In this document: positions 6,254 through 54,133 of the stretch, one piece after another | Numbering within the stretch: position 1 is the stretch's first letter | Layout of the letters: each line of letters opens with the position of its first letter | Notes under the pieces: model-generated | The model's input: only the letters and a program-made list of their open reading frames with translations | Told to the model about the DNA's origin: nothing | The model's database searches: none | From: Podarcis muralis | Lineage: Eukaryota | Assembly: GCF_964188315.1 (NCBI RefSeq) | Contig: NC_135655.1 | Location: 84,568,001-84,632,000, forward strand | Direction of reading: 5' to 3' | DNA: 64,000 nt | Position numbers and translations under genes: made by a program

Positions 6254-9200
6254 TCAGAGGACAGTGCACATGATGGATTCCCTCTCCCTGTGGGAAGGGA
6301 TAATGTCGGGGAAGACATACCGCATGTCACTGAGGACCGAGTCATTCTCCTCAGGGGCCGCTGGCAAGGCGAGTTGCTGCTTCTCCGGCTCTTCAGCACA
6401 GCCTCTGCCCTTTGGGCCTTCTGTTGGCTTGTCCTCCTTTGTGTTGTCTCCTGCGCCCGGGCTCCTGGCTCTAATGGGAAAGGGAGCACCCGCCACTTCC
6501 TCACTGGGCCCAGGCATCCTTTTGTGTGCCCGCCTCGCGCTACCTCGCCTCTTCCTGGAGCTGTCTCGGGAGGCGCCTGCCAGGTGCTGCTGGCCCACGG
6601 TCTCCATCTCAGACAGGCTGTAGGCCAGGGTGGCCCGATGCAGCTCCTTGTCTTCGTCTTCAGGGTGGGTGAAAGAGAACCCTGCGCTCTGCGGGCGTGG
6701 CGGAGTCGGGATGTCCGTAGCAGACGAGCGCAGGATCTCGTGTTGCTCCGGCTGGATGAGCTCCACCGTGGCCTTCAAGTCGTTGTTGGTGAGGTCTGGA
6801 GGTGTGAACAAAGCAAGGGGTGAGGAAGCAGCCCCTTCAGCATCACTCTGTGGGCCCAGCACCCCTGAGGCTCAAAGGGGCTTTGCGCTCTGCCCCAGCA
6901 TGCAGCAGTGTCATTTGGATAGGAATGAGAGACAATGGGAGCAGGGGCAGGGTTCTTTAGCACCTGAGATAGCAACATAGAATGGGAAGCCTTCCCAGTG
7001 CCCCTTCAACCGCCCTCCATCAAGGAGGACCCACTGCCAATGTGAAAAGAATATCCTGACCTCAATGGATTTCTCTGCTTATTTTAATGTGGGAGAAACA
7101 TGGACCAGTTCAAGCCTGGACCCAAATAGTCTTAATCCTTGCACAGCTGCTAATGGGCGATGAGGTACAATGGATGCCCTTATTACTCCAGGGACTGCCC
7201 AGCCTAGAGTGAGCCATAGAGCTGCTCCTGCTCCTCCTCAACTTAGGCTTAGTGTCATCCATTGGCTCTGGCAGTCACAGTAAACACCAGTCACCATTGA
7301 CCGAGATGCAGGCCAAGACCCCCATCTTCCCTTCTAGATGTGTGCCCAACTCTAGTGCCCTCCGAGTTTGATTTCTTACCATTCACTCCTGCCACTTTGA
7401 GCTCCCCGTCTGCGTCAATCTCCATTCTCTCCTGCCCATTCTCAAGGATCCTGCAAAAGAGGCCTTGTCACATTGCATTGCAGCACTTGCCACATTGCAT
7501 TCTGGTCAAGCGTGTGCTGCCGCCACCCCACACCCCACACCCACACCCCAACAGAGGCATTCTTGGTGACTTCTTCCCTAAACTCCCTCCTGCTAGAAGC
7601 TCAGCACAATCCAAACCGGAGCATTGCTCAGAAGCACTGTAAGACTTAGGACAAAGTTAATACAGAGTGGCTATTTTTATCATCAACACTGAGAATGTTT
7701 CACTTCATTTTTTCTGCCTAACAGTTTTTAACTAACACAAGCACAGCATGGGGGCTAGTTATATATCTAAACAAATAAACTGATGGATTGGGAAACCACT
7801 GATAGTAAGCAGGAAACAATTGTCAAGATCTACTCCACAGGGGTAGGAGTTATTAGTTACCAGTATTATTATGCAAGAGCGAGAAGAGTCAGATGTACAG
7901 GGGATGGAGTGGAATTGCAAGGAATCCAAAGGACAAGCTACGCATTCAAAATTATCTCAGTAATAACGAGAACTGGTCAAGAGGAACAAAATGAAATTAA
8001 GCAAGGGCAAATCTGAAACGTTACAGCAAGGATAATTCTTTATTTGCAGTGTTGTGTTGAGGCTTGGACACTAAAGATTTTTAAACCCACACCAGTTCAT
8101 AAATGAACTGTAAGAAGATAAAAGGTTAAACAATCTGAGCAAAGGATCAGCCTACAGATTAAGGAAGGACAATATGCTGGTTGTTTTTAATAGTATTTAA
8201 AAAATCTCAGAAGGTGATCAGGTAGGTGGACAGGGCAAAAATAATTGAAGGGAAGCAGTTTTAGGTTAAACATAAGGAAGAATTTCCCATTTGTAAGAGC
8301 ATTTCATCACACATGAAGTGCTTTTGAAGGTCTCTTCTATTGTATTATTTGCACAGCCCATGAATTTGGGTTAATGGAGGACAGGTAATAGAAAAGGAAC
8401 ATATATTCTAAGTTCAAACAAAATGCCAAATGATGGTTTGGCAAAGTCCCGAACTCACAAACTCCCTCTTCCCCCTTCGCTCTCCATTCTCCTTTTGCAC
8501 AATTTGCTTTAGTGAGTTGTTTCTGCTCTTGCAGAAAATGATAGTTTGCCTTACATCTGATTAGGGGGCAGGCTAACTCGCTTGCGCCTGGCCCCTCCTT
8601 GTCATCTCACCTCCTGGTGGTTATCCGTTTGCCATTGATGTACTTAGTAGATGTGGAGACAGAGCAGAAGCCTATTCCTAATTCAGCACCAGGCCCAAAC
8701 GTAGTGAAGAAATCTAGAAGGGGAAAGTGACAACATCACTGCTGAGGGGGGAGGAGGCAGCTAGCGCAGGCCTCAACACCAGCCAAATGGCAGAGGCCTT
8801 CCCATACTGCAAATGTCATTGGGAATGAAGGGACTGGACAAAAGAGGCACCAACACTTAACAGGAGAATTGTTCCTTGGACATTTAAAAGCAGGGGTGAA
8901 TTGGGTCCTTGTGAGATGACAGAGCCAGAATGAGGTAGAGAAGCAGATATGGAAGAGGCAAAGTGTATTGGAGAAGCACAGAGGCAAACCCTGCAATGAG
9001 CATGTGCAGCAGATTGCCCACTGAGCTTCTCAAGGCTGCAAGGTGATGCGTCCTTACCTGTCTGGAATGGAGAGCTGTAGGAGCAATAGGAGTAGGTGGT
9101 ACAGCCTGGCACGACCCACTGGGTTATTCCTCCTTGAAGATCTGTATATGGGGACAACTCCTCTGGAAAGGAAGGAGGAGGCTGATAAGTGGAAGACTTT

Positions 9201-12200
9201 CCAGTTACACATTATAACCCAGATAATACAGGGACATGTTCAGTTCCGTTGCTTGGTGCAATGAGCCTAAGCAGATCAGGTAATATAATGCAATACAAAT
9301 CCATGATTATACCATACCCCAAGACACAGAGAGGATGTCTTATGTGACATGCACCCCTTCAGTAAGGGCGAGGACAGAGCAGAAAGATTGCAGCCAGGCT
9401 GGAACCTTCCCCCTGTCCTCGTCTCTGTCAAAGCACAAAGAAGAAAAGCCCTGTGGATCATGGTAGTGAATGTAATCCACTGCTGTGGTGGCTGATTCAT
9501 TAGGGTGAACAGAACACTGCTCTGAGCTCAGGCTCAGGCTGGGAGGACAGAGCTCACACAATCCTCTCTCTCTCAAAAGTCCATTCCTCTCCAAATGGCT
9601 CTGTTTCAGCAGCCTGGTGACACAGCAATCCGACACACACTTATCTGGGCACAAGACCCTCTGAAGACAGTGCAACCGCTATCTGAGCAAACATGCACAG
9701 GGGTGAACCGTTGGAGAGGGGAGGAAACATTTTAGTTGTTTCCACTGTTGAAAAAGAATGCAAATAAGAAAAATGTGAGTGAGGCCGTTGTCTTGTAACC
9801 TTGGTCCTGCAAGCTATAATAACATCTAGCTCCTTTGTCTCTGAGAAAGGTACTGCGTCTTGAGAACAGGGTCTTAGTGCCTTTATTTTTTAGCAGAAGA
9901 AGCAAGTTACAGACATTTATAAGCAGGGTGGTGAATCTTTTGCAGCCCAAGGACCACATTCCCTCCCAGGCAGACTTCTAGCAGCTGAATGCTGCTGGTG
10001 GGTGGGGCCAGGTGCAAAGTTGGCAGGGACACAAATGCGGCTCTCACCTTGGTATAGTAAGCGGCAGCCCAGCCATGCAAAACTAAGCCACTTCTGCATC
10101 GCCTCCTTTCCACATCTCTCTATCACAGCAAGCCAAAGCTACTACCAAGGTTCAAAGGCACTTTCCCACCAGAAGAAAGTACTCAAGGAGGATGGTGCAA
10201 GGGAGGGTCAGTAAGGGATGCAGCCTGGGTGCAGCACTGCTGTTTTAAAATAAATCTCTCTTGGCAGAGCACATTGCGTTTAGTCTCTGGCATCTCCAGG
10301 TTAAATGAAGAGAAGTCCCAGGTGCAAAGGCTGATGAAGACCCCTCTGCCCGAGGCCTGAGCTGCTACCCACTAGAGGAGACAGCTGTGAGCCAGAGACA
10401 CCATTATAAAGCAGCTTTATGTTGCCTACCCCTTGTTCCCCTCGTTCCAGCACATACCACAGAGTTCACTAAAGGGATCTTGTCCTGCGAAAAACTCTCT
10501 GAAGACCTCATCTGCATCACGGAAGGTGAACATGAAGTCCGGAGTCTCAGTGGCGCTTGGATAAAACCCAGCACCTTCAAGAAAACAAACCAGATACCTG
10601 TCACCATCACTTCTCAGCACGCTGTGGATGTCTTTCAGGGAGTGAAGGAAGAAGGGAAAGGGCATGATATGCTGAGGACAGCTGAATCTAGGCATGATCT
10701 CTTGGCCCCAAGCAAGATGCAGAGCCAGAAAGGAAGAAACACAGAGCAGGAAGCAGCCCAAACCACAAAAGAAAACAATTCAGTTCCCAGGATTCATTAT
10801 TCCCACTTGATGCAAGAGGGGTCTCCATGCATGCAAGAGGACAGCTCCCAAAATAAAAACACAGAAAGATAGAGTGATAGGGGGCAGGGGTAAAGGATAC
10901 AGTGAAGCAACAATGTGTGTTGAGCCACCCAGATTTTCATCAGGATTTTTTTCTCCTTGTGAGATTTCCAGTAGGGAAGAAAATTTCCAGGTGCAAGCCT
11001 GGAACAGCCTGCACAGGGTAGGTTCCTGCCCTGTGGTGCTAAACAAACTCTATGCTTTCAGGGTATCAGGGAGGAGCACCAGTTGGTGAGAGCACCAGGA
11101 AGTGCTTGTGGTGAGGACTGAGCCCAGAACAGAGGTGCATATGGATAATATGTCCTGCATGTCTACACACCAACCTCCACTCACCTGTGCTTAGTCCTAT
11201 CAGTCCCTCGAGTCCATAGAGGTCATAAAGGTCCCGCTTATAACCTGCCAGAAATAAGGAACAAGAGGAGGCCAGTCCCATCTTGACACCCATTCAACTT
11301 TTGCTACAATCCTGTGCAAATGCTTTAGCTACAAGACTCCTGAGACAGTAGCAGAGCAAGGTGGGAGCGGTGGTGGCGGTCCATCCCAGGTGTCACCACT
11401 AAGTAGGGGGTGACAAAATGCCAGGCAGCACTCACTGTGGGGTCTGCAGCATGTCCGAGCCACACGTCTCTCCCCAAACAGTCTGCCCACCACCTCCCCC
11501 TCAGCTGTAGGGCGGCTGAGTGGCAGGAGGCAGGCAGACTGCTTGGAGGCCCTGCGGAGCATCTTGCCCCGGCTGGCCCCGCTCCCAGACGTAGGACACG
11601 CACGCCGCCCCAGGTGCCCAACTGGCTTGCTCCACCACTGCCCTGAGACACCACAAGCTCTCCCTCCAGCACTAAGCACTGTGGCCCCAAACAGCAGCAA
11701 TGTACTGAGTAGCAGAAAATATAGTTGCTCAAAGTGCCCCTGGTTCTTCCTTTTCAAGAGATGGGTGGAAGGCAGACTGGCAGGTCTAGCAGTGAACCAA
11801 AGGGGATGTCAGGTGCCTGGAGAAGGGGTTGTACAGGAAACTCATGCTGGGTGGACTGTGATTGGGCTGAGCTCTCACTTCTGTGGCCTGCAGGGAGTGA
11901 GAACTGGGAGCCAGCAGCAGCTCAGGAAGAGGCATGTGTGCATTATAGGGAAGGCCTCTAAAAGACCACAAGAAGGCAGGGGGCATATAGGAGCACATAG
12001 GGAACAGCTCAGAGATAGGAGACCCCTGGGATGGGGAATGGCGAGAATGGTCCAATGTCTTACTGTCTGATAGCACTTCATATGCTTCTGCTATCTCCTT
12101 GAATTTCTTCTCCGCATATTCCTTGTTCCCTGGGTTTTTGTCTGGGTGCCATTTCAGTGCATTCTTCCTGTACCTACAGCAGTCCAAAAGGAGAGACTGA

Positions 12201-13680
12201 ACTGTAGGATTACCATTAAGAGAAACCGTCACCTCTCAATATTATGTCAAGAGGAGAGGTGTCATTTCTTCCCCAATACCAGCAGTACATGCCGTGGTGC
12301 ATGCCTAAACTACATAATCTGTTGATTTCTAGAAGCCTTCACATAAGAAGCAATATTGACTAGGGCTGCAATGTTTGGGATTTCAAAGGCGGAATTGACA
12401 TCTGGGGTGGGGATTCCAAAAAAGCTCAACAAAATTTGGGGTGTCCTGGTTTTTACTTTTTTAATATGGCAACCCTAATATTGGCAATTATGTAATTTCT
12501 GTATTCCTAAAATATTACAGAAAGGACCACCACGTAGCCGGCGTACAACCAATTTGTAGGAATACCTTTGTAACCTTGAGGATAGGCTACTATGATGCAC
12601 TCTGTTTGGTTGCATTCAGTTACTATCTGGTGGGTTCAGCTAGTAGACAGTGTGGGATCCTGCTTCCATGCTGGGGTATGCCTCAAAAGATGAATGACAC
12701 CTGTGATGTAGCATCTGCATTGGCTCCCTGTCCTGTTGCATTCTGGGCACAATGCAAGGTGCTAAATCTGACCTCTTAAGCCCCTTTGGCCATTATTATT
12801 ACTGAGTACCTTCTTGAATACATTGTCCATGCACCAAATTCAAATAGCGAGGGCATGTTCAGTGAGTTTGGTGGCTGACCTATAACTGCGGAACTCCTTT
12901 GTCCTAGAATCCTTTGTTCAATCAAAGTCTAGGTCTGTAAGCTCTCCAGAATAGTTGCAGAACTTTTTTTTCTTTGGTCTGGCATTCTGTGGCCAGGGTT
13001 AATCAAGCATGGGGTGATTTTTGTTTGTTTGTTTTGTTTTCTACATGAGTATTATTTCGTCTTCTTTTTGTTTGTGTGTGTCATATTACTCTGTGCACTT
13101 GTAATTATGTCCTTTTGATTTTTCAATAAATGATATTTTTAAAAAGCATGGGGTGATTTTAATTTATTTAGCGATGTTTTCCTATTAATGGCTTTGAAGT
13201 ACAATACTGTAATCTACCTGGAATCCTTGGGAAAAGGTAGGATAGAAATTGAATGCGCCAAATAATATAAATAAAGGGCAGAATGCACAGATATTCCTAA
13301 AGGGGTAGAGGTGAATCACAGTTTAGATGTGTCCAGCACAAAAGCCCCTGGACCTATTTACCTGCAATTTGGTAGTTTATCTACTCTAGAAGGGCTGCTA
13401 TGTATCCACTTCTGTCAAAGGTGAAAAAAGTCATAGTCATTAAAAAAAATTCCCAATAGTGAATAAGGGTGAGGAGAAGGAAGCAGGTAAGATAGACTTT
13501 CCCAAGCTGAACTGGGCAGGCTCCAAACTGATCTGAGCCAAACTGGGCTATTTTATGAAGTGCCAAATTCAGGTCCATATAACATCTTGTGGTTGGTGCA
13601 CCCTGTGCTACTTACGCCTTCTTAATGTCATCTGAGGAGGCCGTTTGAGGGATGTCCAGTGTTTGGTAGTAATCAACCAT
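6254..13680 (-). CDS. DNAJB2: DnaJ homolog subfamily B member 2 (HSJ1b-like), array copy D, ~383 aa
   Basis: Exons 13680-13616 ([22 protein letters not shown]), 12173-12064 ([36 protein letters not shown]), 11244-11185, 10574-10458 ([22 protein letters not shown]), 9141-9058, 8713-8611 ([18 protein letters not shown]), 7450-7380 ([23 protein letters not shown]), 6795-6254. All introns GT-AG with consistent phases; 1152 nt in total. The last exon has a UIM-like [20 protein letters not shown] and ends in CAAX (CTVL*), hallmarks of DNAJB2b. One-to-one orthology needs a tree. Confidence 0.85.
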
Positions 13681-18742: not shown

Positions 18743-21700
18743 TCACAGGTTGTCTTGAAAGAGCTTGCACCAGCATTGGGAGCATCGCGGACAGGAAGAT
18801 GGGGCATTTAGGTCAAACATTTCCCCTTGGCTACTTAAATATGGAGACCAAGTCTTTCCATTATGAGCTGGAGCGTCAATATGTGGAAGAAGCATGCTCT
18901 TCCTTGGATTTAACTGGTTTATTCTATTCCAGGCTTGGATATTTTCCCACTGGTTTACTTGCATGGCCTGATTCGTTCCACGTGGTTTTCTTTTAGCCGG
19001 AAGTGGTGCTTGGCCAGCACCAGAGAACTCGGGGGCCCCACCAAAGAGAAACCTTGCTGTATTTTCTGCTGGGCCAAGCCAGACGGTAGCTGGCACCTTC
19101 CATGTATAAGCAGGCATAGTGCTCTCAGTGTGCTGGGGGTCTACTTTGTTACCTCTCCCATCACTGTTTTGGACCTGCACCTTGCTCTTCCCAGCATTCA
19201 GCTGCTTCTTCTGGACTGCCATGTTGTTCTTCACAGCATGCAACTCATTTTTCTGGACTTTCATCCTACTCCTCTCATCATTCAGTGCCTTCTTTTGGAC
19301 ATTAGCCTTGCTCTTCCCGGCGTGCGTCTTGTTTTCCCCAGCCTGCAGCTCACCCTTTTGGGAACGTTTTGCTTTTCCATCTTTCAACTTTGGCGATATC
19401 AACTTAGTCACCCTCCCTGACATCTCCTTACTTTTGATTGGTGAGGTTTTCCTCCTAGTGTACCTCAGGTGTCCAATACGTGGCTCCTGCTTGTCAGATC
19501 GTTCCTTCTGCCCAGCACACTGCTCTGTCCCACGATCAGGTTCACGTCCTGGATGGGATCTATGTTTCTGTGCTGAAAATTTCTCAGTTTGCATCTCATG
19601 CTTTCCAGGGGCAGCATCAGCTTCCCCACTCCGAAGCTTGTTCTTGGTGCTTGACTCTGACTTCTCATGCCGCTGTTTCGTCTTCCCTGTATGAAGCTTA
19701 TTCTCACCATGCAGCTCAGTTTTTAGCTTGGGAAGCTTAGCCTTCCCCGTATGGGTCTCCCAATCTTCGCTCTGTTGCCTGGCCTTTTCTGCATAGGCCC
19801 CATTCTTCTCAGTTGGGGCTTTCCTCTTCCCGTTGGTGCTCTCGCTATTCTCCACAAGAGGTTGTTTACCAGACTTGCTGCTCCTAGTGTGCAATGCGCT
19901 GTTCTCGACAGGCAGGTTTTTCTCCCTAGTCTGCAATCTCTTTCTCCCATCCTGGGTCTGCTTACCCTTCCCGACTGGAAAATCCTTTTTCTCAGGAGAC
20001 AATTGGTAATGCTTTGCCCGGTGTCTTTTGTGAGGCTTTCTACGTGGATGCAAAGGAAGGGGCTTGCTAGGCTTCTGACCTGGATCGTTGGACTCAGAAT
20101 CTGACTCTGAATTCGGTTCACTGGATTTGGAGCTTGACCTGCTACACTCAGAACTGGACTCAGAACTGGATTCATTAGACTCATCAGAGTTCAAGGTGGA
20201 ATAATGCTCTGAACTCGACGACTCATCATCAGACTCAAATGTTGAGTCATCATACTCAGAACAAGAGCTCTTGTCATTCTCCACACTCAACTCGTCATCC
20301 TGAGAACTTGGTTTGTCTGGCTTGGTGTGGTCTTTCTCGTCTACCGTATTACTCTTGTGTTTCTCATGGGCAGGCATCACACCTGCAATAAACCAAATTT
20401 TTAGTCTTGTGACTATTTTGCTCTGTTCACAGGACAAATCTAAGCCTGATTTCTATGCAGTGGAAACAGTTGTCTGTAGTCTGTCAGACTGTAGTCTGAC
20501 AGGTTTTTCACCTTGGTTCCTTCTGCAACAACCGCCATGTTAACGGGGGGATAAGTCCCCTTTCTTATAAGCACACAGAAAATTTAATGTTCAAGGATGA
20601 ATCTTCAGGCGCATAACAAATACATTTCCTTTAGTTAGTAGAACTTAAGCATTTCAGAAAAGAAGATAAGTGAAATTAAAAGCATAAGTCACAATTTAAT
20701 ATATCAGAAAGATACTTATACCCAACGTCCTTTGAAGGAGATGCATTTTTCTAATCTTTCTCAATTATCAAAGAAAAACAAGACTGCATTCCACAAAATA
20801 TACAACTTCTTGAAAGGATCTGATAATCATATGCCCGAAGTACATACAATGCAACTCCTGCAACAATTTTGATTAAACATAGCTTACTATCATCAAAGCA
20901 AAATAATTTTAGCAACATCTAATAGAACTACATCAAATACAGTTTCTTTTTTTAAAGTGTATATGGATGTAAGTTACATAGATATATTGTATTATAAAAA
21001 GCTAACTGGTACAAAAATGTGTTTGGCTCACACCTGAGCATAATAAAAGTATAAGTTATAAAAATAGCATTGCTGTGAACACAACTTGTTCAAATAAACT
21101 ATACAGGTGTTTTGATTAAGTCAGGCTGATTCAATATTTTCTCCTAAAAGGAGACAAAAGCATTTCGTTGCAAGATAGGAAATGGGGAATAGTGATGTGC
21201 TAGTTTGACACACAGGTCTAGGCTACCTTTGAAGGATGTTACAAAATCAGAAAGATGTCTTTGATTTCCATGTTAACAACTTTAATTGTGATGCTTTATG
21301 GCAAGGTAAATTAGCTTATAGGGCTTGTTCTAGTGTTTCCAGAACCAATCAAAATGGATGCAAAAATGAGTTCAGAAGTGAGCCTATTTGCCACAGTTTA
21401 TTTAATGGACAGTTCAGTTTGTGGCCTGGGATACTCAGCACTTCCATCTTACCTGAAGGCAAAAGTCAGCAAAGCTCATGTGCAAACCACACCATATTTC
21501 CTATAAGACCCCAGGGTGTCTCTTAGAGACCACCTGGTGAGCCCATTACAGTATTCTGAAGTGGTCAGGGCTCTTTGCATCATTAGACCCAAGTTGTTCT
21601 CTGTTCATTCATAGATAGATGGATCATTGAATTAACATATATGACAATACAAGCAACAGAAGACAAGATTAAATAACAATGGATGACTCATCAGTTAATA

Positions 21701-32705: not shown

Positions 32706-32750
<45 letters not shown>

Positions 32751-38700: not shown

Positions 38701-39564
38701 AGCTGCTTCATGTAGAAAATGCAGGCTTGGGTGGTATGAAGAGTGGTGGCAAGGTTTTGGAGGACTGAGGTGTGCCAGGAACTGAACCCTGGCATAAGGT
38801 TTGAGCCCTGACATTGGAATAGGTTCTGAGACTAAACCCTAGTGAGCCTTGTATCAAATTTTCATGGTGAGAGATAGAACCAGGGTACTAGTGCTATTGC
38901 CTAATTAAAGGAACTCTCAGCCTATTCAGGTGAGGTACGTGAACATTGCAGCAGGCATCCTTTTAGAAAAGGCCCATTATTCTTTGTGTAAGAGAATCCC
39001 AGAACAATGGAATCTGGTCATCCAGTCCAACCTCCTGCTCAGTAAAGGATTTGCAATGCAGGAAGGCGAATCTTTCTTTCATGGAGGTTGAAATTTACAG
39101 TGTGTTGTTGTTTTTTTAAGTTGTGTTTTTTAAAAAAATTCTGCTTCTTTTTTTGGGGGGGGGACTGCTGCTTCATTTAGCAGGGCATCCTTTTCATCCA
39201 TCATTTTTGTTGCTGCTGCTGTTGATTTGATCTAGCTGATTAATCAGTTAAATGTTGCAACCTCCCCTAGACGATGCCTAAACAGATGCCGGATCTCTAG
39301 AATAAAAAAATAACCAGCACCTATCGTGCTAGAGCCCAACCATCTCTTCCTTCCTTGACACCAAAAGTATAGCAAGAGATGAATGGTAATTTAATAACTA
39401 CCCTCCAGACCCCATATTGGCTGAGAGCCTGAGAGGGCAACATCTCTCTTAAGAACATGGAAGATGGTAATGGGGTGGACATGGGGAAGCGGCACTTACG
39501 CTTTTTTAATGTCATCCAAGGAAGCATTCTGGGGGAGACCCAGAGCTTCATAGTACTCGACCAT
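30891..39564 (-). CDS. DNAJB2-like paralog, array copy B, ~260 aa without an exon-6 equivalent
   Basis: Exons 39564-39500 ([22 protein letters not shown]), 37780-37671 ([36 protein letters not shown]), 35969-35916, 34510-34400 ([23 protein letters not shown]), 33815-33713 ([18 protein letters not shown]), 32105-32035 ([23 protein letters not shown]), 31159-30891 (GVPTERAS...EPIYE...HIPEF*). GT-AG sites; 783 nt, in frame. Exon-6 equivalent unresolved. Confidence 0.85.
31188..31823. mobile_element. hAT-type non-autonomous element with GC-rich internal repeats
   Basis: TIRs CAGAGGTTTTCAA / TTGAAAACCACTG; flanks GGTTAGAC and AGTTAGAT (6/8); internal cacaccccctggga repeats. Confidence 0.7.
32707..32748. 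repeat. (CA)n microsatellite
   Basis: Visible dinucleotide run. Confidence 0.95.
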
Positions 39565-40049
39565 GGTGGATTGATGTTTCCAGCAGAACCAGTGAGCAGG
39601 ATGTAAACACAGAAAAAGCAGCCAGGTGTTGATTATTGTCTCTGGGTGTCAACCAATGTCTTTGGGTTCTCAACTGAGGTTAGAGGTGGTCATGGCCATC
39701 CACCCGGCTGGGTAACCCCATGCGGAGTAGCAAAAGGCAGTGGTGTGGACAGTTGACCCTACGGCACATGAAAGAGAACTTATACCAGTACATTAGCATC
39801 TCCCAAATCACAAAGAAAAGGCAGTTGTGGAGGAAGGAGAGCTACGTACTTTTATACATTTTTGTCATTTTCCTTGACTCATATAAAGCCATACTGCCTT
39901 TATATAAGCTGAAGTAGCAAAACTACAAGCATTAGAGTTTTTAGCTGTTCAACTCTAGTTTGTCTCTCCCCCCGCCCCTTAGTTTGTGTTATCTTGGTAG
40001 CCTTACCTCCATAGACTTAAATGTGTAGTAAAATGCCAGTAGCTATGCA

Positions 40050-43508: not shown

Positions 43509-44869
43509 CTAGGAGTTATAGGAGCAGCTGGAAGGGGAGGTCAGGGGAGAGGAGAAACTGCCCCTGCCAGGGATCCTATTTACTCTGCCCAGGAGCCTGC
43601 TGGAGATATCTGGGAGATGAGGTGTCATTCCCCCTCCTGTCCAGTAGGCTCCTCTTGGGATGTGTGCATGGATTGCTCTGCCGACGCATGGATTCCTGTC
43701 CCCTCTGGGCCAGTTGGAATGGTCTACAAATATATGGTTTCCACACAGGAAAGGGTTGCCTCCACTAGGCAGCTGCCTCACCCCTCTCTGAGGCGGGTTG
43801 TTTATGTTTGGGAGCTGGCTTATACTGCTTGCCCACTTGTCTCCTTCTGAAACTGGCTCTTTGGAAGGCTGGTGCCCTCTGCACAAAAGCTTCCTCGTTC
43901 CGTCCAGGAATTTCCTCATGCCTCCCAGAAGCCCTTCCGAGGCCTCCACTGGCTGCTTCCTGGCTCCATTTGGTCCCTGGCCCTGCTCCTCAGAAGGCAC
44001 AGCTGGCGGAGTACTTCCAGTTGTCACCCTAAGGGAGGCAGGTGATGCTTCATTGAGACCCGAAGACGGCCTGCTTCCAGAAGCCAACCTGTAGCCAGCA
44101 GGTCCTTGAGCATCTTCAGCATCTCCAGAAGATGGATCCAGAGGGTCGTGGGACTCACTGCATCTGGGATGTGAGATGCAGTCCCTCTGAGGGTTATTCC
44201 AACCCTCAAATTCAGGAGTCGGGGCATCTTTAAGCTGCGATTCATTCTGCTGCAGGGGCCACTCATACACAGGTGAGTACTCACATTCATACGGAGACTC
44301 GTACACTGGGGAGTCCTTGCAAGTATAGTGCGTTTCGTATATTGGAGGGGTATCGTAGCCGTATTGCCATTCATACACAGAAGAGTTGTCAAACCTGTAC
44401 TGAGACTTTGGTCCAGAGGTCTCATATATGCACGGCGAATCAGATGGAGAGATGTCATCATCGTACTGTGACTCATAAATGGGGGAGTATCCGCAGCTAT
44501 ACCGAGGGTCATATATGGTAGAAAACTCATATGCATTTTGAGACTCGTACACAGGAGAGGCTCCATTTTTCTTCACAGGAGATGAGCATCTGGAAGGCAT
44601 CTCGTAAGCTGTGTAAGAGCTGCATCCATACTGCTCTTCATACGTGGAAGACGAAGGATAGGCTGAAGGCACCTCATCTTTCACCACCTCATAGACTGCA
44701 CATGGGTTCTTCCACCTTTCGTAGGACTCAAATCCCCCAAGAGCCTCATCATCTTCATCATACCCCGGCCCCAATCCATTTCCATCATTCTCCTTGTATT
44801 CTGGGACCGACTCATACTCCGTCTGCATTTCACTGCCCACTGCTTCTATGTTGTTGCTTTCGTTTTCAC
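43509..44869 (-). CDS. Large alternative terminal coding exon of copy A (Tyr/Ser/Pro/Glu-rich repeats; long isoform ~658 aa)
   Basis: 1361-nt open frame after a pyrimidine-rich acceptor (tttgtttctgtggtcattgtag|GT GAA AAC). Its phase 1 matches the donor at 47090. AATAAA lies 45 nt past the stop (43459-43464). The link to copy A is inferred. Confidence 0.65.
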
Positions 44870-46025
44870 CTACAATGACCACAGAAACAAAAAACGTTGG
44901 GTTATGGAAAACGAGCAAGGTCCCAAATAAAGAAGAATGGCAACTTAAGCTGACGGAATATGCACAGCTTGCAGACTTAACATATAGACTAAGAGAACAA
45001 GAAGAACATACGGTTAGAGAAGATTGAAAAATGTTTATTGAATATATGGGGGGAACTGTGTACACTTGAAAATGCTGGCAGCATTAAGATAAATTCAACA
45101 GTGTAAATAAGTTTTGATGGATGTAAAAATGGAATACTGAATGGTTTAGTTTATGTAAAATATGCAGGGATTTATGATATGCAGAATGAACCATGGAAAG
45201 AGAAGAAGGGAAGTCATTGATATTTTAAGGATGTTTAAATGAGTATTCTAAATTGTAAAACAGAAAATCTAATAAAAATTATATATATATATGTAAAAAC
45301 CCGTTGGGTTATTTCTTTTTAATAAGCAATTCATTTCCCAAGACAAGGTTCAGCACTCCTAATACTTTCACCAATAGAAAGGGCACCGCTGGTGGGGAAC
45401 AAATTTCCATCCAGACCAGGGATGGTTAGGCTGTAGAGCTCCAGGTGTTGTTGGACTACAACTCCCACCATCCATGCTGGCTGGGACTGGTGAAGGTTGA
45501 AATCCGACAACCTCTGGAGAGCCACAGGTTAATAACCTCTGAAGTAGACAAGTCCCCAGCACTAGGAAGTAAAAGAGCCTGCTTTTTTAATTCATTCATT
45601 CCCATATCAAGAAAGAGGCTTACTGATGCTGAGGTACTTAACCAAAGAGTTGGAAGAACTCAGTCATGGTGGGCGAACACCAGAATCGTTTCCAGTCACA
45701 GAATTCTTGCCCCATACATAGTTTTGACATAACTTTTTCATAAGACCAGTATCTGCTCTAATGACCCATCATTATTTCTAAGATGAACCGAGAACGTATC
45801 AGACAGCGAGCCACAGCCTTTCCCAACCTGCTACCCTCCAGATGTTACTGGACTGCAATTCCCATCAGCACCAGACAACATAGCCAACAGTCAGAGATTA
45901 CAGGTATCATGGGCCCCGTGCTGCCAGCCAGGATGGGACGGGAATGCCAGAGAATGATCCAGAAGTCGGGGTGGAGAAAGTTCAGGCAGTGACTTGGGAG
46001 AGGGTCTTGCCCCACTGTTTTCATG

Positions 46026-48527
46026 TCACGATAAGGAAGAGGAGAATGAAGCTACCAGAGTAGCTGAGGAGGCAGCTGGCCAATCAGTGGAGCCAGGTGA
46101 AGTGGAGGTGGAGGAAGAGTCAGTGTTGAACTCGGGTCGCATTTCCAAAGATGTGCCATTGTATGCACCTGTATGGACAGCTCCTTCTCCCTGTAGGAGC
46201 GCATGCTCCCAAGCTCAGTCTTCTTGCTTGGAATGAGAATAGCATGAATGGCAGGCGCGCACACACTTTAAAAGTAGAACGAGAGCATCATGTCAGTTGC
46301 TGGGACAATGCCTGTGCTTATGCCTATTTTTGTGTTAGAAAGATGTACTCTGTACTTTGAGCTAATGCTGAAACCATGTGCTGATTTCATAAATTAACTT
46401 TCCCCAAGCTGAGAGAGTCTGAGTATTGTTTCCAAAGGTGGGAGCCATGACAATGAACTTTACAGTGCTTTAAGGGTGGTTCACTCCTACCCCTTTACTT
46501 ATGGAGAAGGGGGTGTCTAATCCATATGAGGATTTGTTGGTATAGTACAGTGTTAAAGTGGGATGCGGGTGGTGCTGTGGGTTAAACCACAGAGCCTAGG
46601 ACTTGCCGATCAGAAGGTCAGCAGTTCGAATCCCCACGCAGGGTGAACTCCCGTTGCTTGGTCCCTGCTCCTGCCAACCTAGCAGTTAGAAAGCACATCA
46701 AAGTGCAAGTAGATAAATAGGTACCGTTCTGGCGGGAAGGTAAACGGCGTTTCTGTGCACTGCTCTGGGTTGCCAGAAGCAGCTTAGTCATGCTGGCCAC
46801 ATGACCCAGAAGCTGTATGCCAGCTCCCTCGGCCAATAAAGTGAGATGAGCGCCGCAACCCCAGTCGGTCACGACTGGACCTAATGGTCAGGGGTCCCTT
46901 TACCTTTACCTTTACAGTGTTAAAAGATGATAGTTTAATTAACATCAAATACAAAAGTGCAATCTGTAGCCAGGACAAAAAGACTCAGGCCTCATACTTT
47001 ATTCTGTACCTGCCTGTGAATAACAGGTTGCTCTGGAATAATTCCGAGCTCTATGAACTTTACTGTGGCCCCAAATCATTTCTTCCTACCTGAAGCCTCA
47101 GCAGATTTTATCTCTCTATCATCCTTAGCTTCTACTTGTTCAGAATCTTTATCTGCAGACCTGGAAAATCAACACACTGGAGTTACCCAGTGGAAAGCAA
47201 ACAGATGGACATCCTTTCCCCATCTACCACAACGATGGCTGCTTTAAAAATCTATCAGTGCCCTTTTTAGATTCTGGACACATCTAGAAGATATGGGGCT
47301 ATAGCTCATGTCTTTTAGCTACTACCTAGCAGCAGAAGGCATGACACCCCCATACTCACGGTTTTCACATCCCTTGCAAGCAGCAGCAGCAAATGAAGTG
47401 AGGGGGGAACAGGGGAACTCTGAGCATGATGACATATTGTCACATGTCAGCTTTTACCAGATCCTGAGGTGGGGGGGGGGCACCTATCGGAAATGCAGAT
47501 CTATATCTGTATCTGTACATGGCAGAGCCATGTATCCCCAGCGCAACCCAGCAACCCAGATGCTTAGAAGGTTGAGGTAATTTTCATCTGCTTTAGTATT
47601 TTAACTTTTGTATCTTTTCAAGTATGGTTGTGATATAATCAAGCAGTGTACAAACTTTATGAAATAATATAAAAAAAAAGATTTAGTTCTGTCCTTCAGA
47701 TTTTTTCCATATAAGGATACATCTTTCTGGGTACTTTTTGGCTTAACCCTGCATAACCCTTGGCATCTCATTGCCAGATGCTGGGGAGAGAGGTTCCTAG
47801 GTTTTCTGAGGGCTTCCCTGCTGGGAGTTCCCTGCTGATAGACTAATGCTGGAAATGACCTGAGCTTGCTGTGCACATGCACCTCTGCCTTGAACCACTT
47901 CTTAGCTCTGTTGACCAGCAGCTACTAGGCCATCCCATCTCTGCTTCCCCTTGCATTCAGGGACAGCAGAGGCACAACTCATACCTTTTCCTGCTTATTA
48001 TGTTTCTTAAACTGAAGACTTTGGGATCAAGAGAGAAGAAACATAGTGATCTTTTGGGTCCAAATGTTATTGAAACACCTGCAAAAGAAGATGACAAATT
48101 CATTGCTGGGAACTTATGACCAATGCTAGCAGGCAACTGAGGTTTTCACTACGCTACTGTCCAGTTGCCAGTCATCCCTGCATCCCGTCAGATAGTATCC
48201 TCCAAAGGATGGTTATCTCTTTTTCCTTCAGGACAACCCCTGCCCAAGGCAGTTTGCCTTGTGGACTACAAGTGACCCTAAGCCACTCTGTGTCAGGCCT
48301 CTGAGTCTAGCCTTGATGTTTGAAAGTACTTAAAAGGATGTGCTCTTAGTCACCCAAATGAGAGCTGGAGAAACCCCTTTTATGTTCTTAGTGTATGTTC
48401 CTAATCTTCTAGTTTGAACTCTGAAGCTAGTTTCCTCTGCCTATCCAAGAGCACGTGACAGTGGAACTCAGTGCAAGCTCACACCTGTAGGGGAAAGTTT
48501 ACCTGAAAAAGGGTCTCAGCACTGCAT

Positions 48528-48573
<46 letters not shown>

Positions 48574-51500
48574 CACACACATGGAGTGGGGACTCACCCA
48601 GTCCTCTGCTCCTACTAGGGAACTGGCTAGGAGACCGGAGCACAATGGTCTATCCTATCTACAAGATGATACCTTCCCAATTCTATGTTCAAAAGCTGGC
48701 TAGACAGGCAGTTTAATCCTGCTGCAATGCTGGTGATGGGACAGAGTCCTCCTCCACACCACACCCTCCAACATTTCTCCGATGAAAATTGAGACGTCGC
48801 ATTCCATAATGATAATTTTACTATTTATACCCCACACATCTTACCCAGCCAGCCCCAGCCACTCTGGGCAGTTTCCAACATATATAAATATATAATAAAA
48901 CATTAAACTTTTTTTTAAAAAAAGCTTTCCTATATAGGATTGCCTTCAGACGGCTCAGGAGCTGGATAACTCCATACCCTCCAACATTTCTCCAATAAAA
49001 AGGAAAAGCGGGACATTCCAGGATCAAACCAGAAACAGGGATAACTTATCTAAATCAGGGATGTCCCTGGAAAATAGGGACACTTGGAGGGTCTGCCACC
49101 CCTGAGGGAGAAGGCTAAGAGAGAGGGTGCAGGCCAGGCCACGCAGAACACAGCTGGGTCCACTCTCTGCCCAGAGGCAGCTCTCACTCTACCTAATGAT
49201 AGGGCCATCCCTGGAGAATGGAAACAAGGTTTCTTTAACAACATGTAGGCTTTCTGCGCATTTAATCAATGCTACAAAGGGCCCTAATACACATTGATTG
49301 AAAAGCGGAGGAGTGGAAAACATTGGGGAGAGGGGGAACCTGCTACCCTACCCCTTGCAATCACCTGTGACTGAAAGACTGGCCCACGATATGGCAAAGC
49401 ATAAATTTGAAAATAGATTTCCTCCTCCCTTGTTGAAATTCAGCGTTTTGTCCACTGTGCCATACTGACTAGCAGAAGCAGCAAGTGAAAAGGTTCAGAG
49501 CTCAACTGGAGAAAACTGGAGAGCCAGACTAGCTACTAGAGAAATGGAGGTCAGCCCCCACAACAAGGAAAGATTTGGCAGGGAGGGGGGAGGAAGGACT
49601 CCTAACATCTCCCATAACAGAAGGAGAAAAGCTGAGAGGAGGTTACAGCCGACAGATCAGAAGGCAGAAGAATGGCAGAAGCATTCCAGGTTAGATAGAG
49701 GGATTCACATTTAAAGGTTGGTAACATCCTACCTGAGTCTTCTGAAATGGAGATGGAAAATAAGGGGCCTCGTAAGTACCATGGGACGTCTTCCTCCTTT
49801 TTGGCTGAGAAAGCAGAAGAGTGGGGATAAAATTCAACTCATGGCAACAGCAAGTGGCTTTATGGGCAAACTTAAGTCATTGCAATGCTGGAGTTGCTTT
49901 CTTTTTTATTGCAACCTCCACCACCACTCACTGCTGTTCTATCTGTTTAGAACCATCTCCCCTTTATTATCTACTTCTTTGTCAATTTCCTCTTTGGGGC
50001 CTTTTTAGGTGTTTAAAAACTGACCTTTGTAAACAGCTACATCAACCGTCCCAGATTTGAGTGTTACAGTGGAGGGATGTTCAGACTTTAAATACATGGA
50101 ATTCTGTTACTGCTACTATGAAATAAAATAATAATAACAGAAATGAAATACAACTCCTGCTACTACTGCCAGCCACAATGACTTCTGCTACTGCAAAATA
50201 GTAGCAACCACAGGGACAATAATGACAACATTGTTTTGGTTTCCTAAACAAACGGCTGTTAGTAGTTGCAGAATCTACCAAAGAAATTTGGTTGTTTTTT
50301 TGAAGTCTAATTTTCCACTAAGCTATGGTCCACGTTCAGCCTGGTAGAACTCCAGTGGGTGAGTAGATCTCCTGTCAATGGGAACCACAAGAAAACTGCA
50401 AACACTAAAGCAGGCCCTCCAGCTGTTTTGGGACTACAATTCCCATCATCCCTGACCACTGGTCCTATTAGCTAGGGATGATGGGAGTTGTAGTCCCAAA
50501 ACAGCTGGAGGACTGAGTTTGGGGATGCCTGCACTAAAGGACAGAGTTCACAGTTTTTACAGACAGATACCCAAGAGGAAAGGGTGGAGTGAGGCAAAGG
50601 GATCCTGAAATTCTTTATTCCTGGGGACTGTGGCCCTTTATCTCAACATAACAACCCTTCAGTAACAAAGTCTAAATCTTAGCTATCAAAACACAATCCA
50701 GATAAGAATGACGCTTACCAGCATAAGAGTCTGAGCTGCCAAACATCTCTCGGAAAACCTCCCAAGGGCTGCGGAAGGTGAATTTCAAATCGTCTCCTTC
50801 AGGAACTGCTGGGGTAGTAACATGATTTGCAAACACATCACTGAAGTCCTGGGATGCTCCCACTGTATAATTTTTATGAAGAAAAAAATGGAGAAGCCCC
50901 TTCCCTTTCTGTGTAGCCAGGATGAGTAGTCTGTGACTGGTGCTCCTTTGTGAAACACTCATGAAACCCACCTCTCCACTCGGCACAAGGGATTCTGTGT
51001 GAGCTGGTCACAACTGATGGGAGTTTTAATACAAGGTATCCAGAGGGGAGGGGTCTCCTTTGGGCTCCAGTTCTGGGTTCAAAATAAGATGCCATATGCC
51101 CTATATGTGAGGTTTGTGGGCCTTAGAAGAAAGATGTGTGAAATAGTAGAGAAAGTGTTGTGTATTCAGTGGTCTGTGTTTGCCTGAGCTTGAGTCTGGA
51201 CTAACGAGTCTGAGCCCCTGTGTTCTGATTCGATACATGATAGCCAATCACAGAACATTTCAGGATTTGGGCCTCTGTCATTGGCCCTTAAATTCTGACT
51301 TATGATTCGCAGCTTGGGAGTTTAGACAGCCAATCACATTGGGAGTAGGAGTGGCCCAGGCCTTCAGAAATGTATATAAGCAGTTGCTTTGCGCCTGTTG
51401 TCCCATTCTGTTAGTTCAATAAAGGTTCTTGCTGTTATCACTGTGTCTTGCCTTGTGGGAACCCACCTACGCTTCAGAAAGAATATTGTTACAAAAGCTG

Positions 51501-54133
51501 GATGCCTACCCCTCTCTCTGCCAAGTGGTGGCAAAAGCCCATAGGGTCCCAGGCACACACACAGGGTCTGTGTCCCTTTGGAGAATGGAAGACATGGGGG
51601 AGACTGTCGTGCTTTAAGAAATATGGCTTATTCACCTATTGACACCTTCATTCTGCATGGAGGAAATCCAGATCTTACAGCATACGGACTTCCAGAGGCA
51701 GCAGCACAAGCAACCTTCAGGCTGCTTCCCTCAAAAATAGATGCCAGATCTTCTTCTTCCTTATCTCTCCTAGAAACCTGTCACTTGAAAAATCCCTTTT
51801 CCTGTCCCCTCAAACATACACCCCATCACCTTGGTAACATCTCACCCTCCAGGCTAAAGGATTCCTCTCAACGCTTTGTGTCACATTCGGTTTGCTCTTC
51901 ACTAAGCCAGCCAGACTGCTTTGCATAAGGCAGCCTAGGAATTCCTTTGCAGCTTGCATTCTCCTTTCATACCACAAATAACCAAAACCATAGCATGTGT
52001 TGATTTCTAGGGTTGACCCTAATCTATAACATGGGTTTGAAATAAGATGCCAGACAAATCTTAGCCTATATGTGAGGTTCATGGGCCTTAGAAGAAAGGT
52101 GTGTGAAATAGTAGGGGGGAAATATGTTTCTTACCTGCTGCTGTGATTCCATCCCCATAGCAGTCATAACGTTCACGCTTGGCCTCTGAAGAAAGGAAGG
52201 AGGACTACGTTGGCAAATTCACAAGTAAAACGGTAATCTTTGCACCCTCTAGAAGCTATACTCTGGCTCTGCAATATAGATTATGAAACCTGGCTTCTGC
52301 AGGTAACAATGTTGGCTCCAGGTTTGGGGAGACCCTGAGTAGCCTCGTCTCTTTCTCATCATTGTTACTGCTGCCTCTTGACTTGTTAGGTGAATCCCGC
52401 CTTGCAGTTTGTTAAGGGTGCTGGGAATTTTAGCTCAGCTGGGGAGTAAACTACAGTTCCCATGCTCTTTTGGGGGGCAGGGAACTATGTGCTTTGAATG
52501 TGCTTTGCCCAATTTGCACCACTGCCACAGATGGAGGGCTGCTCTTTCTCTTTGCTCCTGTCCTCGCTCACTTGGTTTGGGCAAGTGAGCAGGCAATGAC
52601 AGCAAAGAGAATTAGCAGGAGTTCGATTAAGGGGCTCCCGGGGTTAGGAGTGGGAGCCCCTGATAGGGTGTGGGCCTTGGCAGATGCCTGGCAGTGCCAA
52701 TCCCTGATGACAAACCTGCCAGGCAATAATTTTCCATAGTTTACCAAAAAGGCCTCTCCCCATAATCCATGTCTATTGCTATCAACTCCCTGGTCTAGAA
52801 GTGTAATCGAAAATAAAGGGGGGAATTCCAGAGAGACAGCCGTCACAACCTCTGATGATTTAATGAAGTGACTTCGGCTAACAAGGGCTGTGAAAATCAG
52901 TGTCCCAAAGCCCAGGGAGACATAAGCCTATGGGATCCCAAATGATCTGAGAGTCAGTCGGTGGCAGAAAGATGAACTTGGGCGCTTACTGTCTGACAAC
53001 ACTTCATAAGCTTCTGTAACTTCTTTGAATTTCTGCTCAGCATAATTCTTCCTATCTGGATTTTTATCCGGGTGCCACTGTAGGGCTTTCTTTCTGTACC
53101 TGCACAGACCCAGGAGAGAAAGGGAATGCAGTATTTGAGCGTCACAGCACCTTCTGCAACAATAAACCGCCTTCAATGCAAATCCCAGTTAAGAACGTAA
53201 AAAGAGCCCAAACACCTATGTAGTCCTGATTTCTGTTCTTACAGTGAACAACCAGATGCCCATGCAGGACTGGCACAAGAATTTGGGGGGCCTTAGCATG
53301 GTGCCAATTATGCCCCACCCACCTATACACAAACACCACCACCTCAGCCAGGCCCAGCCCAGCTGCCCCCACTAGCATACTTTTTCTGCCCCAGCTGCTA
53401 TTTTGGTGCTCTCCACTGGGCCACCAGGCACTGACCATTGTCTTAAGTCCCCCAAAATCAAATGCCCCAATCCATAAAGCTATGGAATCTATAGATGGTG
53501 GACAGTCACCAGAAAGGTAAGTTGAGTTTAGTAGGGCCCTTCTTGTTCTTGCTCTAAAGCACTGCTGCTTGTCTACCACTGAAACAAGTCTGGTGGCCCA
53601 GTGGGGTACAGTCCATGATGCAATTGCCAAAGCACCACTTTCTACATTAAAGAAAATACACTATCACATACCCTCTGACATCCCACTGAACAAAATCAGG
53701 GCGCTTGTTCTTTTGGTTCCCAGCTCTCACGGGAGCCAGCTGATTCGCACAAGCAAGCGAGACCAAGAAACAAGCATATTTTGGTTTGGTGCTCTGACTC
53801 AAGCCAGCTGACTCACACAAGAGTGGCAGGTGGAGAAACAGCACATTTCAGGATCCGGTCAGAAGCTGGGATGGCTTCTGTAATTCCAGGATGCCCCACC
53901 TAAAATGGGATAGTTGAGGGGCATGCTGTCATGTATTAAATGTTGTCTGATGTGTTAATTGAACTGGCATCAGGAATCTTTTCTTCCTGCCTCACACATG
54001 GCTTGAGTTGCGGGAAAGGCCCCAAGAGAGAACACTGAGAATTCAAGAGAAAGACTTACGCCTTTTTAATATCATTGTCGGAGGCATCCCGAGGAATCTC
54101 TAAAAGCTTATAATAGTCTGGCACGGCATCCAT
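46026..54133 (-). CDS. DNAJB2-like paralog, array copy A, short-tail model, ~252 aa
   Basis: Exons 54133-54060 ([25 protein letters not shown]), 53099-52990 ([36 protein letters not shown]), 52185-52135, 50862-50719 ([18 protein letters not shown]), 49804-49733, 48078-47985, 47160-47090 (71 nt, phase 2 to 1 like DNAJB2 exon 8), 46168-46026. 759 nt, in frame with GT-AG sites. The last four exons are strongly diverged and were assigned by size and phase. Confidence 0.75.
46560..46912 (+). mobile_element. Sauria SINE, full length, with target-site duplication
   Basis: tRNA-like head, (ACCTTT)n tail; TACAGTGTTAAA at 46546-46557 and 46913-46924. Confidence 0.9.
48531..48570. repeat. (CA)n microsatellite
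   Basis: Visible dinucleotide run. Confidence 0.95.
48750..49095. repeat. Interspersed repeat, two tandem fragments of the ccctccaacatttctcc...gggacacttggagggtctg family
   Basis: Same motif string at 16500-16650 and reversed at 56640-56790. Confidence 0.55.
50411..50531. mobile_element. Palindromic hAT-type MITE
   Basis: Near-perfect hairpin (ggactacaattcccatcatccct / agggatgatgggagttgtagtcc); exact 8-bp TSD CACTAAAG. Related copies near 18500, 27130, 32220, 33150, 34790, 40370, 45417 and 57540. Confidence 0.85.
51156..51493 (+). mobile_element. Solo LTR
   Basis: TG...CA ends, 4-bp TSD AAAG, two AGCCAATCAC boxes, TATATAA and AATAAA in U3-R-U5 order. Confidence 0.75.

Follow-up and report, generated by a model that had tools for sequence, protein, structure and literature searches.

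A cluster of DNAJB2-type J-domain genes with unrelated last exons in Podarcis muralis

J-domain proteins decide where Hsp70 acts, and DNAJB2, DNAJB6 and DNAJB8, all human disease genes, are the main anti-aggregation members among them. Mammalian DNAJB3, DNAJB7 and DNAJB8 came from DNAJB6 as intronless retrocopies, and the extra class members of mammals are partly testis-enriched. Canonical DNAJB2 sits between TUBA4A/TUBA4B and PTPRN. A recent account of how the class B'(ST) J-proteins evolved covers human-lineage duplications only and includes no sauropsid DNAJB2 duplications (PMC12799103). Here we analyse a stretch of 64,000 nucleotides from the lizard Podarcis muralis (assembly GCF_964188315.1, contig NC_135655.1, 84,568,001 to 84,632,000, forward strand; below, the window, in whose numbering all positions are given), which holds four minus-strand J-domain genes, A to D, and the start of a fifth, canonical DNAJB2. 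It is very probable, in our view, that this five-gene cluster was formed by tandem duplication of DNAJB2 with its introns kept, that the J domains stayed conserved and the tails are disordered and differ from gene to gene, and that the products are Hsp70 co-chaperones.

Gene content and shared exon plan

The HPD-codon pattern CAYCCNGAYAAR (His-Pro-Asp-Lys codons) matches the window exactly four times, each time on the minus strand; 0.36 matches would be expected by chance. The four sites fall inside a four-copy 117-nt repeat family (12059-12175, 25041-25157, 37666-37782 and 52985-53101), and direct reading shows that AG and GT border each of them. The gene models, for which annotated orthologues served as templates and splice sites were read directly, have GT..AG at every intron and frames that are open throughout. 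On the minus strand the gene order is TUBA4A > A > B > C > D > canonical DNAJB2. The models are as follows (aa, amino acids).

HPD exon, minus strand, exactly 110 nt, AG/GT borders, entered in phase 2: A 53099-52990, B 37780-37671, C 25155-25046, D 12173-12064.
43509..54133, minus strand: gene A, 8 coding exons (54133-54060, 53099-52990, 52185-52135, 50808-50719, 49804-49733, 48078-47985, 47160-47090, 44869-43509), 640 aa; tblastn with the annotated orthologue P0017, AG/GT borders, intact open reading frame (ORF), orthologues across Squamata.
43509..44869, minus strand: last exon of A, 453 aa, entered in phase 1; transcript contigs, dN/dS (ratio of nonsynonymous to synonymous substitution rates), AlphaFold2 (AF2) model, motif count.
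30891..39564, minus strand: gene B, 7 coding exons (39564-39500, 37780-37671, 35969-35916, 34510-34400, 33815-33713, 32105-32035, 31159-30891), 260 aa; model, annotated squamate orthologues of 259-269 aa.
39500..39760, minus strand: exon 1 of B with the 5' untranslated region (5'UTR); transcript contigs ending at 39500.
30891..31159, minus strand: last exon of B, 89 aa, acidic, phase-1 entry; conserved in Rhineura, Anolis and Zootoca.
18743..26326, minus strand: gene C, 4 coding exons (26326-26202, 25155-25046, 23618-23568, 20382-18743), 641 aa (624 aa without exon 3); model, transcript contig, squamate orthologues.
23568..23618, minus strand: exon 3 of C, a 51-nt cassette with a remnant of J-domain helix IV (SNKRNLD); transcript contig.
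18743..20382, minus strand: last exon of C, 546 aa, phase-1 entry; orthologues, dN/dS, AF2 model.
6254..13680, minus strand: gene D, 8 coding exons (13680-13616, 12173-12064, 11244-11185, 10574-10458, 9162-9058, 8713-8611, 7450-7380, 6795-6254), 390 aa; model, turtle homology, tree, dN/dS against gecko.
6795-6254, minus strand: last exon of D, 181 aa, with a motif like the ubiquitin-interacting motif (UIM) and the end CTVL.

Exon sizes recur between the copies: besides the 110-nt exon of A, B, C and D there is a penultimate exon of 71 nt in A, B and D, an internal one of 103 nt in B and D, and one of 51 nt in A and C, which is the helix IV exon of both. Intron phases agree between the copies, and the last exon is entered in phase 1 in all four genes. 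When minus-strand open frames were compared across the four regions, B had four further exons in common with D, and A had one in common with B and D. Of the DNAJB2 scaffold, A keeps eight exons and B seven.

The product of A begins with a J domain, in which most positions are invariant among squamates, continues with a middle region of diverged DNAJB2 type and ends in the 453-aa tail of Tyr repeats. A is a possible class B'(ST) member: its exons agree with that class in size and phase and a 15-residue stretch is kept, and its beta-domain region, which has diverged strongly, is invariant among squamates and forms, in the AF2 model, three weak strands with pLDDT (predicted local distance difference test) under 50. 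The tail is predicted to be disordered; [SP]P[VI]YE is present in it five to seven times, and a helix, LLGGMRKFLDGTRKLL, is conserved. A general repeat scan found a 51-nt repeat family in A with spacings that are mostly multiples of 36 nt, and Tandem Repeats Finder gave no meaningful array on the tail exons of A and C; the repeats in these two exons are old. A Ser-rich open frame (23% Ser) is seen at 46029-46214 on the minus strand, between exon 7 and the tail exon of A. It may be the alternative last exon that the earlier note on this DNA, made from the letters only, had proposed for A.

In the product of B a J domain is followed by a short glycine/phenylalanine (G/F) region and a C-terminal beta domain of the DNAJB2/6 type; the acidic tail (89 aa) contains RYRSAP and EPIYEV, both conserved. 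With its G/F region, serine/threonine (S/T)-rich segment and beta domain, B shows the class B'(ST) plan. An extra exon between 34400 and 33815 was considered and ruled out, since the frame runs on from exon 4 to exon 5 without it and orthologues are 259-269 aa long. Gene D has the same three class B'(ST) elements in a complete DNAJB2-type scaffold, followed by one UIM-like motif and a CAAX end, which reads CTVL in the window, CIIL in Eublepharis and CVLL in Emys (motif match only). The first UIM of D is unrecognisable and the second lies below any Pfam score. Identity of D to gecko D is 74%.

The product of gene C starts with 20 extra aa at the N-terminus, followed by J-domain helices I-III and a charged tail of 546 aa. 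It contains neither a G/F region nor an S/T segment nor a beta domain, exon 2 (optionally exon 3) leading straight into the tail exon, and thus lies outside the class B'(ST) plan. The frame is kept whether exon 3 is included or skipped; this exon is missing from lacertid RefSeq models, and gecko retains KRNLYDCY. Among squamates the C J domain hardly varies, nor does exon 2, and the C tail runs from a Ser/acidic part through a Lys-rich part to a conserved Trp/Cys-rich C-terminal block. An ESM Atlas search with this block gave scores of ~0.5 and was uninformative. Because the G/F region and beta domain are lost, C is formally a class C J-protein. Exon plan and cluster position mark it as a DNAJB2 derivative, one that, as far as these features tell, descends from class B'(ST) without keeping its architecture. 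The identification of C as a cylicin or as DNAJC21 was rejected, since a Pfam scan of the C orthologues P0001 and P0009 (E up to 0.1) gives DnaJ only.

HPD is coded in all four genes, which marks them as J-domain proteins; D was judged by direct translation and its identity to gecko. In orthologues of A, B and C the Pfam DnaJ domain is found with E values from 1e-16 to 1e-26 (A, P0017, 7e-26; B, P0038, 1e-26; C, P0001, 6.6e-20, profile positions 1-55 of 63), and in the Pfam scan of these orthologues DnaJ is the sole domain, with none in the tails. The tails of A, B, C and D are mutually unrelated, pairwise blastp giving E > 0.2 throughout, and a profile-profile comparison of the A and C families aligns them in the J domain exclusively. 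AF2 models of A and C (10 or 11 orthologues) are confident for the J domain only, the tails being of low confidence bar a few helices.

The fifth gene begins at the left edge of the window and the tubulin gene stands at the other end of the cluster.

2709..3080, minus strand: first exon of canonical DNAJB2, in a CpG island; residues 1-124 of Podarcis raffonei DNAJB2-like X1 (P0093), 97.6% identity.
1025..1111, minus strand: second 5' exon of canonical DNAJB2; residues 133-161 of the same protein, 83% identity.
58165..60935, minus strand: alpha-tubulin (TUBA4A-like), synteny anchor upstream of A; ORFs 58165-59064 and 60498-60935.

The coding exons of canonical DNAJB2 lie past the left window edge, downstream of D. 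The Podarcis raffonei RefSeq DNAJB2-like X1 has 169 extra N-terminal residues read from the 5' exons, and this extra N-terminus looks like a prediction artefact of an upstream ATG. In squamates canonical DNAJB2 has ~290 aa and both UIMs, is almost identical to the DNAJB2 of tuatara, birds and alligator, and is clearly distinct from D; it occurs as a 289-aa 'a' form with two UIMs and as a CAAX 'b' form. In Eublepharis it starts 9 kb downstream of D. In Emys, D is followed by DNAJB2 and then, on the opposite strand, by a gene of 979 residues that we take to be PTPRN. We ruled out D as the DNAJB2 orthologue, since the canonical gene is a separate locus, D has a clade of its own (99/94) and two UIMs are not recognisable in it; D is, by homology, a DNAJB2 paralogue. 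Because canonical DNAJB2 is a locus separate from D, the cluster counts five genes.

A SINE-like (short interspersed element-like) squamate element with the core ACTACAACTCCCATCATCCC occurs at eight sites within 18523-57605, in introns and intergenic parts of the cluster, and copies are also seen at 50421-50510 and 57568-57657. It gave rise to spurious ORF matches between the genes.

Much of what the earlier note had read from the letters stands. The models confirm its four head-to-tail minus-strand genes, each with a J-domain exon at the start, the HPD exon of 110 nt and a last exon entered in phase 1, and the blastp values (E > 0.2 for all pairs) agree with its statement that the last exons are unrelated. 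It had described these as a ~453-aa Tyr-repeat exon in A, a short acidic one with EPIYE in B and one of ~546 aa, Ser/acidic then Lys-rich, in C; they are found at 44869-43509 (453 aa), 31159-30891 (with EPIYEV) and 20382-18743. Its intron-preserving tandem duplication of a DNAJB2-type gene fits the recurring exon sizes and matching intron phases. Its exon content was right for the start, HPD and last exons and missed six middle exons of A, five of B and the 51-nt exon of C. For D, where it had announced UIM and CAAX, the CAAX holds (CTVL) and the UIM is only UIM-like, without a Pfam match. Two corrections apply: the cluster has five genes and not four, canonical DNAJB2 starting at the left window edge, and D is not DNAJB2 itself, since the canonical gene is the fifth and D groups with turtle and gharial genes.

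Expression, conservation and selection

Spliced transcripts were found in RNA runs of a close relative, roughly 97% identical in DNA to the source species. These runs contain ~47% of the sampled 31-mers of the C tail and of the A tail, in the same runs. For C, a 2113-nt contig (depth 52) joins exon 1 > 2 > 3 > tail exon; its joints 26199>25152, 25046>23618 and 23565>20379 have CT..AC ends, that is GT..AG on the gene strand. The A tail is covered by contigs of 1530 and 1751 nt (43443/43187-44871, depth 593 and 416) whose loose end is the reverse complement of the exon 7 end, which gives the exon 7 > exon 8 junction. Contigs of B exon 1 (depth 1724, 1641 and 61) have a loose end that is the reverse complement of the first 30 nt of exon 2, and an upstream non-coding 5'UTR exon is joined to them from ~40799 (joint 39757>40799, CT..AC ends). 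In the close relative the splicing of A, B and C agrees with the models, and the three genes are expressed together. Many reads and contigs of every RNA run fall on a short repeat at 24076-24125, in intron 2 of C (depth up to 350, both ends loose); it is an expressed repeat family and not gene C.

Protein searches with the A and C tails return squamate matches only, from every major lineage including geckos, and nearly all of these matches have a J domain and about 620-680 aa. Orthologues of A, B and C are present in Gekkota, Scincoidea, Lacertoidea, Anguimorpha, Iguania and Serpentes, annotated as 'uncharacterized', 'DNAJB6-like', 'DNAJB2-like', 'DNAJC21-like', 'cylicin-1-like' or 'nipped-B-like'. 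For the B tail, a full HMMER search of 1.84 billion representatives gave squamate proteins and one bacterial match, and a full-length snake B query returned orthologues of B from across Squamata, 259-269 aa long and called 'DNAJB6-like' or 'DNAJB2-like'. The bacterial match (P0037), a type IX secretion system (T9SS) repeat protein, is weak and was dismissed as chance.

Gene order is the same wherever neighbours are visible: tubulin > A > B > C in Rhineura, B > C > D in Anolis sagrei, B > C in Candoia, B exons (unannotated) > C > D in Zootoca and C > D > DNAJB2 in Eublepharis. In Zootoca vivipara (L005:603-5181) B exons 5-7 are present at a place where no gene is called, with a protein 85-92% identical to that of the window. 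A 786-aa model of Eublepharis macularius (P0016) fuses a truncated C tail to the whole of D and is either a read-through or a prediction artefact; at this C-D locus C, D and canonical DNAJB2 are seen as three separate J-exon sets.

Selection was measured as pairwise Nei-Gojobori dN/dS, with one-sided binomial tests against neutrality.

A tail against Rhineura: 0.34, p 2e-11.
A scaffold exons against Rhineura: 0.17, p 6e-8.
B exons 5-7 against Zootoca: 0.33, p 0.003.
B tail alone against Zootoca / Rhineura: 0.41 / 0.57, p 0.08 / 0.07.
C tail against Zootoca: 0.505, p 0.003.
C tail against Rhineura: 0.43, p 1e-8.
C tail, Ser/acidic first 100 codons, against Zootoca: 0.085, p 3e-5.
D tail against gecko (dS near saturation): 0.22, p 5e-9.
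D scaffold exons against gecko: 0.16, p 1e-10.
HPD exons of A, C and D against various species: 0.02-0.13, p 1e-5 to 0.004.

In A, C and D constraint is greatest on the HPD exon; for A against Rhineura its dN/dS is 0.024. The earlier note had named a lack of spliced A-C transcripts and neutral dN/dS as outcomes that would speak against its proposal. Neither was seen, since the junctions of A, B and C were found in the close relative and dN/dS lies below 1 (0.16-0.57).

The cluster is a real, old expansion of a known family and is undescribed in the literature, in which we found no paper on a DNAJB2-type cluster in squamates or reptiles. The family and its way of working are known already, and the genes are in public annotation under poor names. 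Of the undescribed set that the earlier note had suggested, the literature part is therefore upheld and the rest is not, RefSeq/GenBank annotation existing in many squamates under uninformative or wrong names.

Origin of the cluster

The main tree (55 proteins, 214 columns, rooted on DNAJB6/B3) sets all sauropsid sequences apart from mammalian DNAJB2 (95/84), and the split from the DNAJB6/B3 outgroup has 100/100. D sequences of squamates, turtles and gharial form one clade (99/94). A second group holds the canonical DNAJB2 of alligator, birds, turtles, tuatara and squamates together with a subgroup (89/97) of squamate B, the turtle short 'DNAJB2-like' proteins and squamate A, which stands on a very long branch within the turtle short forms. 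These data support duplications of DNAJB2 after the sauropsid-mammal split, with D-type and B-type genes that would predate the split of squamates and turtles.

The tail of D is homologous over its full length, UIM-like motif and CAAX included, to turtle proteins of 368-453 aa (36-39% identity, E ~1e-22) and matches a gharial protein more weakly. These long turtle proteins, annotated 'DNAJB6-like', match D in the whole tail and lie directly upstream of DNAJB2 in Emys; with orthologues in turtles, D has been retained since the squamate-turtle split. The turtle short 'DNAJB2-like' proteins (238-245 aa) have FMFHFRS, GFCF, a missing fifth exon and the tail motif RY[RK]SAP in common with B, whereas the remaining tail is not alignable. 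A-type and C-type tails were not found in turtle proteins. Within 10 kb on each side of Emys D and of the Emydura B-type gene there is no A- or C-type tail and no further J exon; this negative weighs little, because Emys D, the one turtle gene compared, spans ~3x its lizard counterpart. As found, the A and C architectures appear to belong to squamates only, from geckos to snakes. The array as a whole is not specific to lizards or squamates and is older in part, with D-type genes in turtles and gharial and B-type genes in turtles.

Proposed action and comparison with known systems

We propose that all four products, A to D, act as Hsp70 co-chaperones whose J domain would stimulate ATP hydrolysis by Hsp70 and whose tails would steer this activity to different clients or places. 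D might do so by prenylation of its CAAX, which ends in L, and by its UIM-like motif, in the manner of the DNAJB2b isoform, as these motifs suggest. A CAAX in which X is L directs geranylgeranylation. B would use its short acidic tail with the conserved RYRSAP and PIYEV, A its conserved amphipathic helix and its tail of Tyr repeats, which with its [SP]P[VI]YE motifs may be a phosphotyrosine or short-motif scaffold, and C its Ser/acidic-then-Lys-rich tail with the conserved Trp/Cys-rich end. The P[IV]YE motif common to A and B could be a phosphotyrosine or other short linear motif, and the C tail resembles, in composition, acidic/basic disordered regions that bind nucleic acids or cytoskeletal elements. 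Stimulation of Hsp70 is the likeliest function, given that HPD and basic helix II do not vary and that in A, C and D constraint is strongest on the HPD exon.

It might be argued that the paralogues work mainly without Hsp70, the J domain being a folding or dimerisation unit and the tails having structural, cylicin-like cytoskeletal or chromatin-binding functions. One annotation does call C 'cylicin-1-like', a name that its Lys-rich repeats explain, and the transcripts are very abundant (word depth about 1700 in B, 590 in A), which fits abundant structural proteins as well as chaperones. However, the HPD tripeptide and basic helix II stay unchanged in every family, and the Pfam scan gives no match to cylicin or any other domain in the tails. 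Constraint in A, C and D is strongest on the HPD exon (0.02-0.13), as expected if contact with Hsp70 is selected, so that we regard this explanation as unlikely. Still less probable is that some copies, especially C or D, are transcribed relics or pseudogenes on their way out. This would agree with the loss of the G/F, S/T and beta domain parts in C and its degenerate, skippable helix IV exon, with a high dN/dS of 0.5 in the C tail, where local windows come near or above 1, and, for D, with a disturbed UIM and no RNA support here. Yet the ORFs of C (641 aa) and D (390 aa) are intact, the C architecture is the same from geckos to snakes with exon 2 nearly invariant across Squamata, dN/dS of the C tail is significantly below 1 (p=1e-8), and D has dN/dS of 0.16-0.22 and orthologues in turtles.

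The explanation to which we give least weight, a very slight one, is that the long A and C tails are separate genes or UTRs misjoined to the J exons by gene prediction. Predictors do fuse neighbours, as in Eublepharis P0016, which joins C to D, and the N-terminal extension of Podarcis raffonei P0093 is dubious, but here a single 2113-nt contig holds exons 1, 2 and 3 of C and the start of the tail exon with the GT..AG introns removed, and A-tail contigs run straight into exon 7 of A. Moreover, the tail junctions of C and A each keep one long reading frame, and the frames of both tails are under purifying selection.

Several observations weigh against the proposal of a DNAJB2-derived cluster of Hsp70 co-chaperones itself. 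Hsp70 stimulation, prenylation, ubiquitin binding and tyrosine phosphorylation are all read from motifs. C has no canonical helix IV, its exon 3 being a degenerate cassette. Lizard D has no Pfam UIM match and carries a one-residue insertion in the UIM core (window 6600-6700; RATLAYS, with RAMAYS in gecko and turtle); the insertion shifts the Ala-Ser spacing of the motif relative to the RAMAYSLSE of gecko and turtle D. The spliced transcripts come from the close relative and not from the source species, and they cover A, B and C and not D. For the source species, one older run gave a small mismatch-free contig of the A tail, and ~1.9 Gb sampled from each of two RNA-seq runs had no reads on C exons. 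The missing C in these two runs suggests tissue-restricted expression of the cluster genes.

Other points concern the history of the genes. The restriction of the A and C tails to squamates rests on annotated proteins and not on genome searches of tuatara, birds and crocodilians. By approximately unbiased (AU) tests, a grouping of A with squamate B and one of squamate B with the turtle forms both stand (p 0.30 and 0.38), so that more than one branching order among A, B and the turtle B-type fits the data. A tree of the J domain only (74 columns) does not place C. The same tree groups all turtle paralogues, canonical, D-type and B-type, with a support of 96 in the SH-aLRT (Shimodaira-Hasegawa-like approximate likelihood ratio test), though their tails show them to be old paralogues; gene conversion among the tandem J exons may have occurred. 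Since the turtle paralogues all group together, this tree was not used for dating.

If our reading of the cluster holds, reptiles expanded DNAJB2 itself, with a J domain almost frozen and a last exon replaced, and kept the result across all major squamate lineages. The cluster then provides natural test cases of the way in which disordered tails give a fixed chaperone module new targets. The misleading database names 'DNAJB6-like', 'DNAJC21-like' and 'cylicin-1-like' are corrected as well, and D, with its UIM-like motif and CAAX, should not be taken for the DNAJB2 orthologue. A wider proposal, which we put forward as tentative and rather doubtful in its full form, is that the five-gene cluster is a sauropsid one to which squamates added two unique architectures, the Tyr-repeat J-protein A and C, a J-domain-only protein whose tail of some 550 aa is charge-segregated, and that A and C supply abundant tissue-specific adaptors, perhaps of the germ line. 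If this is true, assemblies that are regulated by phosphotyrosine, or that contain nucleic acid or cytoskeletal elements, would be the places to which A and C bring Hsp70. By analogy the cluster might then parallel DNAJB3/7/8, the testis retrogenes of mammals, with another genetic route leading to it.

Among known systems, cylicin-1 is like C in Lys-rich-repeat composition only, and no cylicin domain is found in C by Pfam; DNAJC21 has the J domain alone in common with C, in which Pfam finds no zinc-finger domain. DNAJB2 (HSJ1a/HSJ1b) is much closer. The J domain, the 110-nt HPD exon and the phases are common to it and to A, B and D, as are, less clearly in A, the G/F region and the beta domain; with D it shares, in its HSJ1b form, also a CAAX ending in L in addition to one UIM-like motif. 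It differs in its two UIMs, whereas A, B and C have none and end in unrelated tails. The class B'(ST) proteins DNAJB6, B8, B7 and B3 follow the same plan of J domain, G/F region, S/T-rich segment and beta domain. In contrast to mammalian DNAJB3, B7 and B8, which derive from DNAJB6, the additional lizard genes derive from DNAJB2, keep their introns and stand in tandem.

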